Source: Oculina patagonica
Lineage: Eukaryota
DNA length: 64,000 nucleotides
Reading direction: 5' to 3'
Assembly (NCBI RefSeq): GCF_052425735.1
Contig: NC_135758.1
Span: 22,134,001-22,198,000, forward strand
The notes under the pieces are model-generated. The model saw nothing but the letters and a program-made list of their open reading frames with translations. It was not told the DNA's origin and made no database searches. Positions within the stretch are counted from its first letter, which is position 1; the number at the start of each line of letters is the position of its first letter. Made by a program: the position numbers and the translations under genes. This document shows, piece by piece, positions 61,291 to 64,000 of this stretch.

Positions 61291-64000
61291 ATGAATGACA
61301 TAGAAGACCTTTTACAAGCCATCTCTATCGGCTTAGTTGTTGCTACTTTTCTTCTCAACACTGGTTGTGATCAAAAAGCCATCGAAATATGCAAAGAATG
61401 TTTGATTTTCCTCAGTAATGAAGTACTGAAAAAAGAGGAACAAATTATCAATTTAATTACCACTGCTACCTATCTAACAATGTTCAAGGCATACTCTATT
61501 CTCCCTGATTACACAAATACAATAAAATACGGCAGAGAACTTCTTGTCATTTTCCGAGAGTCCGGTGAAACAGCCAAAGAATGGAATATCACCAAAGCAC
61601 TAGCCAACATATATGAACGGCAGTGTGAATATGTAGAGGTAAGACAACTGTATGAGAGAGCGATCGATATCACAATACAAACTGGCGACAGAAAACAACA
61701 AGCATACGCTTATGGACAATGCGGAAGTATGTCTTATCAACTTGGAGAATATGTAAAAGCTAAAGAATATCATGAAAAAGAACTTGCGATCAGTATTGAA
61801 ATTGGAAACAGGCAAGGAGAAGCGTCATGCTACGGGAACTTAGGAGTCGTGTTTCAATCTCTTGGTGAATATGACAAAGCTAAAGAATATCTCGAGAAAG
61901 CACTTTCGATCAGAATTGAAATTGGTGACAGAGAAGGAGAAGCAGCAGATTACGGAAACTTAGGAGTCGTGTTTCAATCTCTTGGTGAATATGACAAAGC
62001 TAAAGAATATCACCAGAAAACACTTTCGATCAGAATTGAAATTGGTGACAGAGAAGGAGAAGCATCATCTTACGGAAACTTAGGAGTCGTGTTTCAATCT
62101 CTTGGTGAATATGACAAAGCTAAAGAATATCACCAGAAAGCACTTTCGCTCAGAATTGAAATTGGTGACAGAGAAGGAGAAGCATCGTCTTACGGAAACT
62201 TAGGAGTCGTGTTTCAATCTCTTGGTGAATATGACAAAGCTAAAGAATATCACCAAAAAGCACTTACGATCAGAATTGAAATTGGTGACAGAGAAGGAGA
62301 AGCAGCAGATTACGGAAACTTAGGAGTCGTGTTTCAATCTCTTGGTGAATATGACAAAGCTAAAGAATATCACCAGAAAACACTTTCGATCAGAATTGAA
62401 ATTGGTGACAGAGAAGGAGAAGCATCATCTTACGGAAACTTAGGAGTCGTGTTTCAATCTCTTGGTGAATATGACAAAGCTAAAGAATATCACCAGAAAG
62501 AACTTTCGATCAGAATTGAAATTGGTGACAGAGAAGGAGAAGCATCGTCTTACGGAAACTTAGGAGTCGTGTTTCAATCTCTTGGTGAATATGACAAAGC
62601 TAAAGAATATCTCATGAAAGCACTTGCCATCAAAACTGAAATTGGTGACAGAGAAGGAGAAGCAGCAGATTACGGAAACTTAGGAACTGTGTTTCAATCT
62701 CTTGGTGATTATGACAAAGCTAAAGAATATCACCAGAAAGCACTTTCGATCAGAATTGAAATTGGTGACAGAGAAAGAGAAGCATCATCTTACGGAAACT
62801 TAGGAACTGTGTTTCGATCTCTTGGTGAATATAACAAAGCTAAAGAATATCACCAGAAAGCACTTTCGATCAGAATTGAGATTGGTGACAGAGAAGGAGA
62901 AGCATCATCTTACGGAAACTTAGGAGTCGTGTTTCAATCTCTTGGTGAATATGACAAAGCTAAAGAATATCACCAGAAAGCACTTTCGATCAGAATTGAA
63001 ATTGGTGCCAGAGAAGGAGAAGCATCAGATTACGGAAACTTAGGAACTGTGTTTCAATCTCTTGGTGAATATGACAAAGCTAAAGAATATCTCGAGAAAG
63101 CACTTTCGATCAGAATTGAAATTGGTGACAGAGAAGGAGAAGCATCATCTTACGGAAACTTAGGAGTCGTGTTTCAATCTCTTGGTGAATATGACAAAGC
63201 TAAAGAATATCACCAGAAAGCACTTTCGATCACAATTGAAATTGGTGACAGAGAAGGAGAAGCTTCATCTTACGGAAACTTAGGAAGTGTGTTTCGATCT
63301 CTTGGTGAATATGACAAAGCTAAAGAATATCACCAGAAAGCACTTTCGATCACAATTGAAATTGGTGACAGAGAAGGAGAAGCTTCATCTTACGGAAACT
63401 TAGGAACTGTGTTTCGATCTCTTGGTGATTATGACAAAGCTAAAGAATATCTCGAGAAAGCACTTTCGATCAGAATTGAAATTGGTGACAGAGAAGGAGA
63501 AGCAGTAGATTACGGAAACTTAGGAACTGTGTTTCAATCTCTTGGTGAATATGACAAAGCTAAAGAATATCAGGAGAAAGCACTTGCGATCAGAATTGAA
63601 ATTGGTGACAGAGAAGGAGAAGCATCGTCTTACGGAAACTTAGGAGTCGTGTTCCAATCTCTTGGTGAATATGACAAAGCTAAAGAATATCTCGAGAAAG
63701 CACTTGCCATCAAAATTGAAATTGGCGAGAGAGCAGAAGAAGCATCATGCTATGGAAACTTAGGAAGTGTGTTTCGATCTCTTGGTGAATATAACAAAGC
63801 TAAAGAATATCACCAGAAAGCACTTTCGATCAGAATTGAAATTGGTGACAGAGAAGGAGAAGCATCATCTTACGGAAACTTAGGAACTGCGTTTCGATCT
63901 CTTGGTGAATATGACAAAGCTAAAGAATATCACCAGAAAGCACTTGCCATCAAAATTGAAATTGGTGAGAGAGCAGAAGAAGCATCATGCTATGGAAACT
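61291..64000 (+). CDS. TTC28-like tetratricopeptide-repeat protein, 5' part (open at window end, >900 aa)
   Basis: Acceptor at 61271, ATG at 61291 (MNDIEDLLQAISIGLVVATFLLNTG..KAIEICKECL), no stop before 64000. 40-aa TPR units LGEYDKAKEYHQKALSIRIEIGDREGEASSYGNLGVVFQS. Absent from the ORF track because no stop codon falls in the window. Confidence 0.9.
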   Translation, partial: MNDIEDLLQAISIGLVVATFLLNTGCDQKAIEICKECLIFLSNEVLKKEEQIINLITTATYLTMFKAYSILPDYTNTIKYGRELLVIFRESGETAKEWNITKALANIYERQCEYVEVRQLYERAIDITIQTGDRKQQAYAYGQCGSMSYQLGEYVKAKEYHEKELAISIEIGNRQGEASCYGNLGVVFQSLGEYDKAKEYLEKALSIRIEIGDREGEAADYGNLGVVFQSLGEYDKAKEYHQKTLSIRIEIGDREGEASSYGNLGVVFQSLGEYDKAKEYHQKALSLRIEIGDREGEASSYGNLGVVFQSLGEYDKAKEYHQKALTIRIEIGDREGEAADYGNLGVVFQSLGEYDKAKEYHQKTLSIRIEIGDREGEASSYGNLGVVFQSLGEYDKAKEYHQKELSIRIEIGDREGEASSYGNLGVVFQSLGEYDKAKEYLMKALAIKTEIGDREGEAADYGNLGTVFQSLGDYDKAKEYHQKALSIRIEIGDREREASSYGNLGTVFRSLGEYNKAKEYHQKALSIRIEIGDREGEASSYGNLGVVFQSLGEYDKAKEYHQKALSIRIEIGAREGEASDYGNLGTVFQSLGEYDKAKEYLEKALSIRIEIGDREGEASSYGNLGVVFQSLGEYDKAKEYHQKALSITIEIGDREGEASSYGNLGSVFRSLGEYDKAKEYHQKALSITIEIGDREGEASSYGNLGTVFRSLGDYDKAKEYLEKALSIRIEIGDREGEAVDYGNLGTVFQSLGEYDKAKEYQEKALAIRIEIGDREGEASSYGNLGVVFQSLGEYDKAKEYLEKALAIKIEIGERAEEASCYGNLGSVFRSLGEYNKAKEYHQKALSIRIEIGDREGEASSYGNLGTAFRSLGEYDKAKEYHQKALAIKIEIGERAEEASCYGN
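61741..64000 (+). repeat. Coding tandem array of 120-bp units (18 full + 1 partial)
   Basis: Units start every 120 nt from 61741 (61861, 61981 ... 63901) with no indels. Confidence 0.97.

Follow-up and report, generated by a model that had tools for sequence, protein, structure and literature searches.

In this work, we analysed a 64,000-nt stretch of the genome of the stony coral Oculina patagonica (the window), whose distal end carries a tandem array of near-identical 120-bp units encoding tetratricopeptide repeats (TPR). We believe that this region is probably the 5′ part of a coral TPR-CHAT (TTC28-like) gene with a single-exon body, in which a homogenised and reshuffled TPR array would form a peptide-binding groove and would be followed by a CHAT domain. 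Taken by itself, the window locus is largely unremarkable, adding one further, partly visible member to the published coral TPR-CHAT family. The family-wide repeat code at fixed TPR positions, on the other hand, is a genuine feature, and one that is new relative to the available portions of the two published reports on the family (PMC12314368 and PMC9145168). A receptor-like role of this code is plausible but unproven.

The open reading frame (ORF) starting from the ATG at 61291 reaches the end of the window and comprises 903 codons with no stops, with the array units lying in its frame. Tandem Repeats Finder (TRF) revealed a single array (61741–64000) with a period of 120 bp, 18.8 copies, 91% matches, 0% indels and a score of 3690, in agreement with the initial annotation of this DNA, where about 19 near-identical, indel-free 120-bp units had been described. 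When cut in 120-bp steps from 61741, which is the unit numbering used here, the array resolved into 18 full units, followed by 100 bp of a further unit truncated by the window edge; the window sequence does not contain any N. In all pairwise comparisons, the units differed by 0–26 of 120 nt, units 3 and 6 being identical and 17 of the 18 full units being distinct in sequence, and the mean pairwise identity amounted to 85.5% at the protein level and about 92% at the DNA level. Variation was found in 43 of the 120 nucleotide columns and in 25 of the 40 codons, 17 of them amino-acid-changing and 8 synonymous only. The non-synonymous events were restricted to 17 codons vs. 23.9 expected under a uniform spread (P = 0.0002), which bears out the earlier claim that the differences recur at a few codons, and all the residue alternatives listed at that time (SS/AD/SC/SD/VD, V/T/S, Q/R, HQ/LE/LM/QE, S/A/T and R/K/T/S) were indeed present. 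The statement that synonymous variants are few proved to be overstated: the minimum count of events among the units was 16.5 synonymous vs. 35.5 non-synonymous.

According to Pfam, the window product contains TPR_12, TPR_10 and TPR_1, with TPR_12 scoring E = 1e-226 over 15 stretches. A search with the first 175 (non-repetitive) residues retrieved 277 proteins, practically all of them TPR + CHAT, with the best at 71% identity (E = 1e-186). Among the 120 matches listed, which are 920–1489 residues long, the CHAT domain PF12770 was present in 120/120, and at least 106/120 also bore the dyad motifs HxAAHG and LSCCHS, spaced as in caspases. The named matches come from the stony corals O. patagonica, Orbicella faveolata and Pocillopora meandrina and are often titled ‘tetratricopeptide repeat protein 28-like’. 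As far as the available part of PMC12314368 goes, coral genomes encode 276–362 ‘TPR-CHAT domain-containing proteins’ each vs. 1–2 in most animals, and the coral genes reside in non-syntenic, haplotype-variable regions, with TPR lengths of 31–3832 residues in Acropora; the accessible text of PMC9145168 describes the same expansion in Montipora and guesses at a role in the cell cycle. The published guesses on function, within these excerpts, range from ‘cell cycle’ to ‘functional diversity’, and the portions of both reports at hand deal with variation in gene number and TPR length, with no description there of within-array homogenisation or fixed hypervariable positions. The window has the N-terminal region of the family, its TPR_12 units and its tandem clustering, as well as the highly variable TPR number (5 to at least 19 units among the neighbouring paralogs here), but differs from it in that the CHAT part of this copy lies outside the window.

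The TRIM-NHL protein encoded in the window (18235–20412) exactly matched a product on the record CM126635.1 of the assembly GCA_052425735.1. The same record bears two TPR-CHAT paralogs, P0001 and P0002, at about 36 kb and 164 kb from the window. Assuming that the window has the orientation of the record, it covers approximately 22.134–22.198 Mb, while three further TPR-CHAT genes are found in locus L001 (22.235–22.285 Mb) and one in locus L003 (about 22.363–22.373 Mb). Since the genes of L001 and L003 follow on the same record, the window is, given the shared orientation, at the edge of a tandem TPR-CHAT gene cluster on an O. patagonica chromosome. The nearest paralog (L001:1–2608), about 36 kb from the window and encoding an 878-residue product whose first 9–10 residues fall outside L001, has an N-terminus (L001:1–421) that is 95.7% identical to that of the window at the DNA level, without gaps, and its first unit matches the divergent first unit of the window array. 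This paralog, the best stand-in for the part beyond the window, ends in a CHAT domain (PF12770, E = 2.5e-56) bearing HFAAHG and LSCCHS. Because all the close homologues combine TPR with CHAT, the window gene is very likely coupled to a downstream CHAT domain, as judged from its paralogs; the earlier assignment to TTC28-like proteins is thus upheld, every close homologue being TPR + CHAT and the CHAT domain of the nearest paralog being intact.

To describe the fold, the unit was numbered like a consensus TPR (CTPR), A-S-S-Y-G-N-L-G being positions 1–8, and this register was confirmed by CTPR alignments. Helix A then spans positions 37–13, and helix B positions 17–34. The AlphaFold 2 (AF2) model of residues 1–430, built with a 107-sequence paralog alignment (A1), had a predicted local distance difference test (pLDDT) score of 93.8 and consisted of regular helix pairs; the helices in the N-terminus were 2–23, 27–41, 50–69, 75–91, 94–110, 114–131 and 134–150, so that in the model the first 150 residues appear as degenerate helix pairs continuing the repeat stack. 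The whole set of at least 19 TPRs is predicted to form a superhelix. In Foldseek, the best solved matches were the TPR complexes of LGN/GPSM2 and Pins (template modelling (TM) score by target 0.75–0.85, 32–33% identity), whose ligands are NuMA, Inscuteable, Frmpd4, afadin and whirlin, and the best reviewed AlphaFold (Swiss-Prot) structure was TTC28, ahead of GPSM1/2. The alignment with the LGN sequence (6HC2/3SF4) was gap-free over 186 residues and put the G-N-L-G of the window on the Leu-Gly-Asn triplets of LGN. Without exception, the window units (19/19) carry Asn at TPR position 6. In LGN/Pins, the peptides lie in the inner groove, where their backbone is held by bidentate hydrogen bonds from the Asn side chains of the Leu-Gly-Asn triplets (PMC3438535).

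LGN/GPSM2 and Pins (PDB 3SF4, 4WND, 6HC2, 4A1S) are thus similar to the window product in the 40-residue unit, in the absence of gaps over 4.6 units and in the conserved asparagine, but they differ in having 8 diverged repeats followed by GoLoco and in serving spindle orientation, whereas the window has at least 19 near-identical repeats and paralogs with a protease. Orthology to GPSM1/2, which bear a C-terminal GoLoco, was rejected, as the full-length paralogs end in CHAT. Human and mouse TTC28 (TPRBK), which ranked first among the reviewed structures (TM by query 0.77), shares the TPR-then-CHAT order with the paralogs, but it is only 26–27% identical, single-copy, 2481 residues long, has diverged repeats and is implicated in mitosis/cytokinesis; the coral copies represent a separate lineage-specific expansion.

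To find out which positions vary, we used 700 ungapped 40-residue units from 99 proteins, 18 units being from the window and 682 from 98 homologues. Among the 682 non-window units, an entropy of at least 2.2 bits was found at positions 2, 3, 9, 12, 18, 24, 31, 32 and 38, and the consensus of the alignment A1 shows an ‘x’ at these nine positions in every repeat. The per-site entropy of the window correlated with that of the family (Spearman 0.63, P = 1.4e-5). Rather than on coordinates, the mapping of sites was based on helical periodicity and helix boundaries, on the alignments with CTPR and LGN and on contact positions from the literature; judging by helix periodicity, positions 38, 2, 9 and 12 form one helix-A stripe around the conserved G5, N6 and S13. 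In Hop, positions 2, 5, 6, 9, 12 and 13 contact the ligand (PMC1261162). Position 24, with L, H, Y, F and I alternating across the family, seems to serve packing rather than contact.

The units of the window array are more alike than is usual in the family: their mean identity of 85.5% is the second highest among the 67 members with at least six units, the median being 68%, so the description of the array as homogenised stands. Unit 1 is divergent, though it matches unit 1 of the closest paralog; the internal units, by contrast, are homogenised, and this combination of a divergent edge with a homogenised interior is the usual signature of unequal exchange. The pairs 2/5, 3/6 and 4/7, which arose by duplication, differ by 4, 0 and 2 nt, and the identity between units peaks at lag 3 (0.9305, the highest of all lags); a regular super-repeat sought within the array by lag analysis was not found, the only such element being one 3-unit duplication. 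All four gametes were present in 64/190 pairs of informative sites, indicating that the variants were reshuffled inside the 120-bp unit. The nearest paralog, being only 4% apart in the N-terminus, has 5–6 units vs. at least 19 in the window.

Identical alternative codons (ACT/AGT/GTC, GAT/TCT/TGC and CTC/CAC) turned out to be common to all five arrays examined. At the remaining codons, when the hypervariable set was excluded together with positions 25 and 29, which vary in the window, the nucleotide distance was 3.0–5.2% within the arrays and 3.4–4.9% between the arrays of different genes, while the N-termini of the compared genes differed by 4–16% from that of the window. For one of these genes (gene B), the synonymous divergence from the window was 0.21 in the N-terminus and 0.12 in the units. 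Because the units diverge less than the N-termini, these comparisons suggest an exchange between the paralogs or a recent common source of the units.

Several irregularities were seen in the neighbouring members of the cluster. The array of P0001 is interrupted by about 3 kb (L001:33593–36652) that have no matching ORF and are annotated as an intron; the P0001 model spans 30 kb across another TPR-CHAT gene and may be chimeric. The paralog at L001:24188–27111 appears to be split into two ORFs, one for the N-terminus and TPRs (24188–25495) and the other for CHAT (25531–27111, called a separate 496-residue gene), which hints at a frameshift or stop separating the array from the protease. P0002 (L003) is devoid of the second half of the N-terminal region, so that ...SILSDYTNA passes directly into a TPR unit, as if the degenerate N-terminal repeats had recombined with the array. 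Large non-coding satellites lie between the TPR-CHAT genes at L001:16129–17908 and 46897–48079, with periods of 111/222/333 bp and 151/301 bp.

The mechanism that we envisage builds on what the array shows. Unequal crossing-over and gene conversion keep its units alike and apparently act between neighbouring paralogs as well; the alternative codons found at the variable positions form a common pool that is reshuffled among the units, while the scaffold, including the Asn of G-N-L-G, stays invariant. The inner groove lined by helix A would bind an extended peptide, with the ladder of invariant asparagines holding the peptide backbone as in LGN, and positions 38, 2, 9 and 12, one helical turn on either side of the Asn, setting the specificity. 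The gene would continue into a C-terminal CHAT caspase-like protease, as in the paralogs. Changes in repeat number and order would then create novel surfaces for binding, through which the protease would be recruited or gated, perhaps in the context of immunity or allorecognition.

A number of observations weigh against this interpretation, and most of them are also expected under a possible, though less likely, explanation, namely neutral concerted evolution: unequal crossing-over in a region of unstable copy number would have enlarged and homogenised an ordinary TPR scaffold, with the variable codons being merely tolerant positions and with neither selection for diversity nor a receptor function. 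Magliery and Regan found positions 2, 5, 9, 12, 13, 33 and 34, on the concave face, to be the most variable in TPRs generally (PMC1261162); positions 2, 9 and 12 are thus among the least constrained in all kinds of TPR, and relaxed constraint predicts the same map. The initial annotation had placed the variation at ligand-binding positions. This holds insofar as positions 2, 9 and 12, which belong to the canonical groove (PMC1261162), are variable both here and family-wide, but the helix-A concave stripe accounts for 27% of the pairwise amino-acid differences in the window, position 3 for 10% and other places for 14%, whereas 49% fall in helix B (24, 25, 27, 29, 31 and others), which is not the groove. 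Furthermore, single variants have swept through the window array, GTC (Val) at position 9 occurring in 10/18 units, TCG (Ser) at position 29 in 13/18 and CAG (Gln) at position 25 in 10/18, while being rare in the other arrays; such array-specific sweeps look like drift under homogenisation rather than maintained diversity.

The selection tests gave results of both kinds. For the whole unit, the synonymous diversity (piS) was 0.108 and the non-synonymous diversity (piN) 0.077, with the ratio of 0.72 favouring the neutral explanation; without two divergent units, the ratio was 1.08. A tree-based count over 61 units of five arrays gave a non-synonymous to synonymous rate ratio (omega) of 0.70 overall, and the N-terminal domain is fast-evolving too (pN/pS 0.63–0.66). 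At the nine family-defined hypervariable codons, piN was 0.225 and their own piS 0.206 (ratio about 1.1), and the events numbered 19.5 non-synonymous to 4.5 synonymous, near the neutral expectation. We judged the own piS of these codons uninformative alone as a denominator, since it is inflated by codon swaps differing at 2–3 bases, e.g., GTC/ACT/AGT. When compared with the other 31 codons (piS 0.079, piN/piS 0.43), the hypervariable piN exceeded the synonymous diversity of the rest 2.83-fold (codon bootstrap 1.47–6.56, with 0.12% of replicates at or below 1), which argues against neutrality. So do the alternatives lying 2–3 nt apart per codon and common to the five arrays, i.e., old variants kept despite homogenisation, and the hypervariability of the same nine positions across 98 homologues of several coral genera. 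In the tree-based count, omega exceeded 2 at TPR positions 9 (3.05), 24, 31, 38, 12 and 29, evenly split between the groove stripe and helix B, where 24, 29 and 31 score like the groove sites; position 9 alone passes the Bonferroni threshold, and recombination inflates such counts. The earlier expectation for dN/dS was therefore only partly borne out, with the whole unit at 0.72 and a handful of sites, half of them in helix B, above 1. Taken together, the evidence for selection for diversity, or for ligand binding by the variable sites, is suggestive rather than decisive.

Another group of unfavourable observations concerns the C-terminus of the TPR-CHAT gene proposed here, as its CHAT domain would fall beyond position 64000, off the window, and is deduced from the paralogs. 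The window product was not found among proteins of 497–1580 residues with the N-terminus as a query or of 819–2606 residues with P0002 as a query, nor among the cluster representatives, where the best identity was at most 61%; the product could lack annotation or be very long, or the gene could prove a pseudogene further along. This absence would also fit a decaying young duplicate, that is, a recent paralog with a ballooned array, a broken downstream part and no present function, and with a divergence of only 4.3% from the nearest paralog in the N-terminus, the intact ORF could reflect mere youth; the insertion of about 3 kb inside the P0001 array shows that such damage occurs in the cluster. 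We nevertheless consider decay improbable: the 903 codons are free of stops and frameshifts, the scaffold codons are under purifying selection (piN/piS 0.43 outside the hypervariable codons), and the absence from the database is weak evidence because the 878-residue product of the intact nearest paralog is equally missing from the 819–2606-residue search. An assembly artefact, with the length and order of the array resulting from the collapse or mis-joining of near-identical repeats, would be in line with the likeness of the units (91–100%), with the identity of units 3 and 6 and with the array running past the window edge, but is very improbable given the absence of N and indels, the perfect reading frame, 17/18 distinct full units, four other arrays of this unit in neighbouring genes and its presence in homologues of several other corals, as well as the same kind of loci in the phased, gap-checked Acropora assemblies described in the available part of PMC12314368.

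Returning to the homogenised TPR-CHAT gene as the preferred interpretation, we compared it with known repeat-based receptors. The label of an NLR-like protein given by the initial annotation had to be abandoned, as Pfam assigned neither NACHT nor NB-ARC, nor any other NTPase, to the window protein or to the full-length paralog, and the N-terminus consists entirely of helix pairs; NLR/STAND identity was hence rejected. The TALE-like label fared no better: TALEs have repeats of 33–35 residues with a base-reading diresidue, whereas the unit here, a TPR helix pair of 40 residues, shows homology to LGN, which binds peptides, and nothing is TALE-like about it beyond its being a repeat protein. A likeness to the fungal NLRs remains at the level of the repeats. 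Dyrka et al. (2014, PMC4986451) described fungal NLRs with 42-residue TPR units, repeat-number polymorphism and selected sites on the concave side, and found high-internal-conservation repeats in about 0.8% of metazoan repeat proteins; the internal conservation of the fungal NLR repeats is set at more than 85%, and the window array shows 85.5% at the protein level. Just as in the TPR, ANK and WD repeats of the fungal NLRs, the coral units are near-identical (40–42 residues for TPR), change in number, vary at a few positions including concave ones, and undergo concerted evolution within and between loci. In contrast to them, the coral protein is an animal one without NACHT/NB-ARC, its effector is fused directly as a protease, and a part of the variation is in helix B. 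The TPR-CHAT proteins of conflict systems (fungal gasdermin-activating, PMC12881547; bacterial DdvA, PDB 8ROT) likewise have a repeat sensor fused to a caspase-like CHAT. The CHAT region of a further paralog, P0103, aligns to 8ROT with His and Cys in register, but the similarity is marginal (E = 0.001), no gasdermin or partner gene was seen beside the window gene, and a functional link would be by analogy alone.

A broader proposal, which we regard as conjectural and rather unlikely, is that the coral TPR-CHAT arrays might be the animal counterpart of the fungal high-internal-conservation receptors. They would constitute a germline repertoire of several hundred receptors diversified by recombination, where the Asn ladder and a reshuffled code at positions 38, 2, 3, 9 and 12 would read peptides, and where binding would switch on the fused protease for immunity or allorecognition without an NTPase switch. 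The parallel with fungal non-self receptors, if true, would be relevant to immunity in corals, to how they handle symbionts and to the fusion or rejection of colonies. As corals have hundreds of TPR-CHAT genes in copy-number-unstable regions, the homogenised arrays, the shared codon pool and the Asn-flanking positions give a testable binding model; homogenisation of the arrays appears to act at the DNA level, even between neighbouring genes.

The features of the TPR-CHAT region are collected in Table 1. The paralog models P0001 and P0002 carry ...EDV(M/I)NDIE preceded by residues from upstream exons, and from these models we infer that the window gene is spliced likewise, so that an upstream 5′ exon may be joined at the acceptor. 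The upstream block shared with the paralogous loci may be a promoter, a 5′ exon or a repeat element, while the rest of the upstream sequence up to the ATG is 75–80% identical to the upstream regions of the paralogs. A perfect (TAT)23 microsatellite at 61055–61123, about 170 bp upstream of the main exon, might influence a promoter or an intron, or mark an unstable spot.

Table 1. Coordinates of the TPR-CHAT gene region within the window.
Feature	Position	Strand	Evidence
Upstream block common to paralogous loci	60504..60775	+	blastn, 93–99% identity to L001:10844–11213 and L003:10869–11241
Probable 3′ splice acceptor, a pyrimidine run followed by ...ttacag/AAGAGGACGTC (slash, splice site), directly before the ATG	61270..61290	+	Direct reading of the sequence
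N-terminal 150-residue helical region of degenerate TPR-like helix pairs, which defines the TPR-CHAT subfamily	61291..61740	+	ORF, AF2 model, homologue search; ATG 61291 is the first Met of the main exon
Homogenised TPR array, 18 full and 1 partial 120-bp units, 40-residue LGN-type TPRs	61741..64000	+	TRF, unit table, Pfam, LGN alignment, Foldseek
Recent internal three-unit (360-bp) duplication, units 2–4 = units 5–7	61861..62580	+	Distance matrix, lag identity

Elsewhere in the window, two convergent TRIM-NHL genes (RING, B-box, filamin, NHL repeats) are located at 18196–20415 (+) and 22774–25737 (−); the former is a single-exon gene for a 726-residue product, the one with the exact match in the public assembly. 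An MACPF-like ORF of 416 residues (33807–35781) ends in KDEL, and a related copy that looks broken is found at approximately 31815–32830 on the minus strand. Judged by eye from its translation, an isolated 211-residue ORF (50292–50927) corresponds to the central part of elongation factor 2 and may be a lone exon or a fragment of a processed pseudogene. Finally, within 500 bp at 56268–56762, a 17-bp unit (TGTCCGTCTTAGAGAGG-like) forms three short arrays, which are probably subrepeats of a mobile element.

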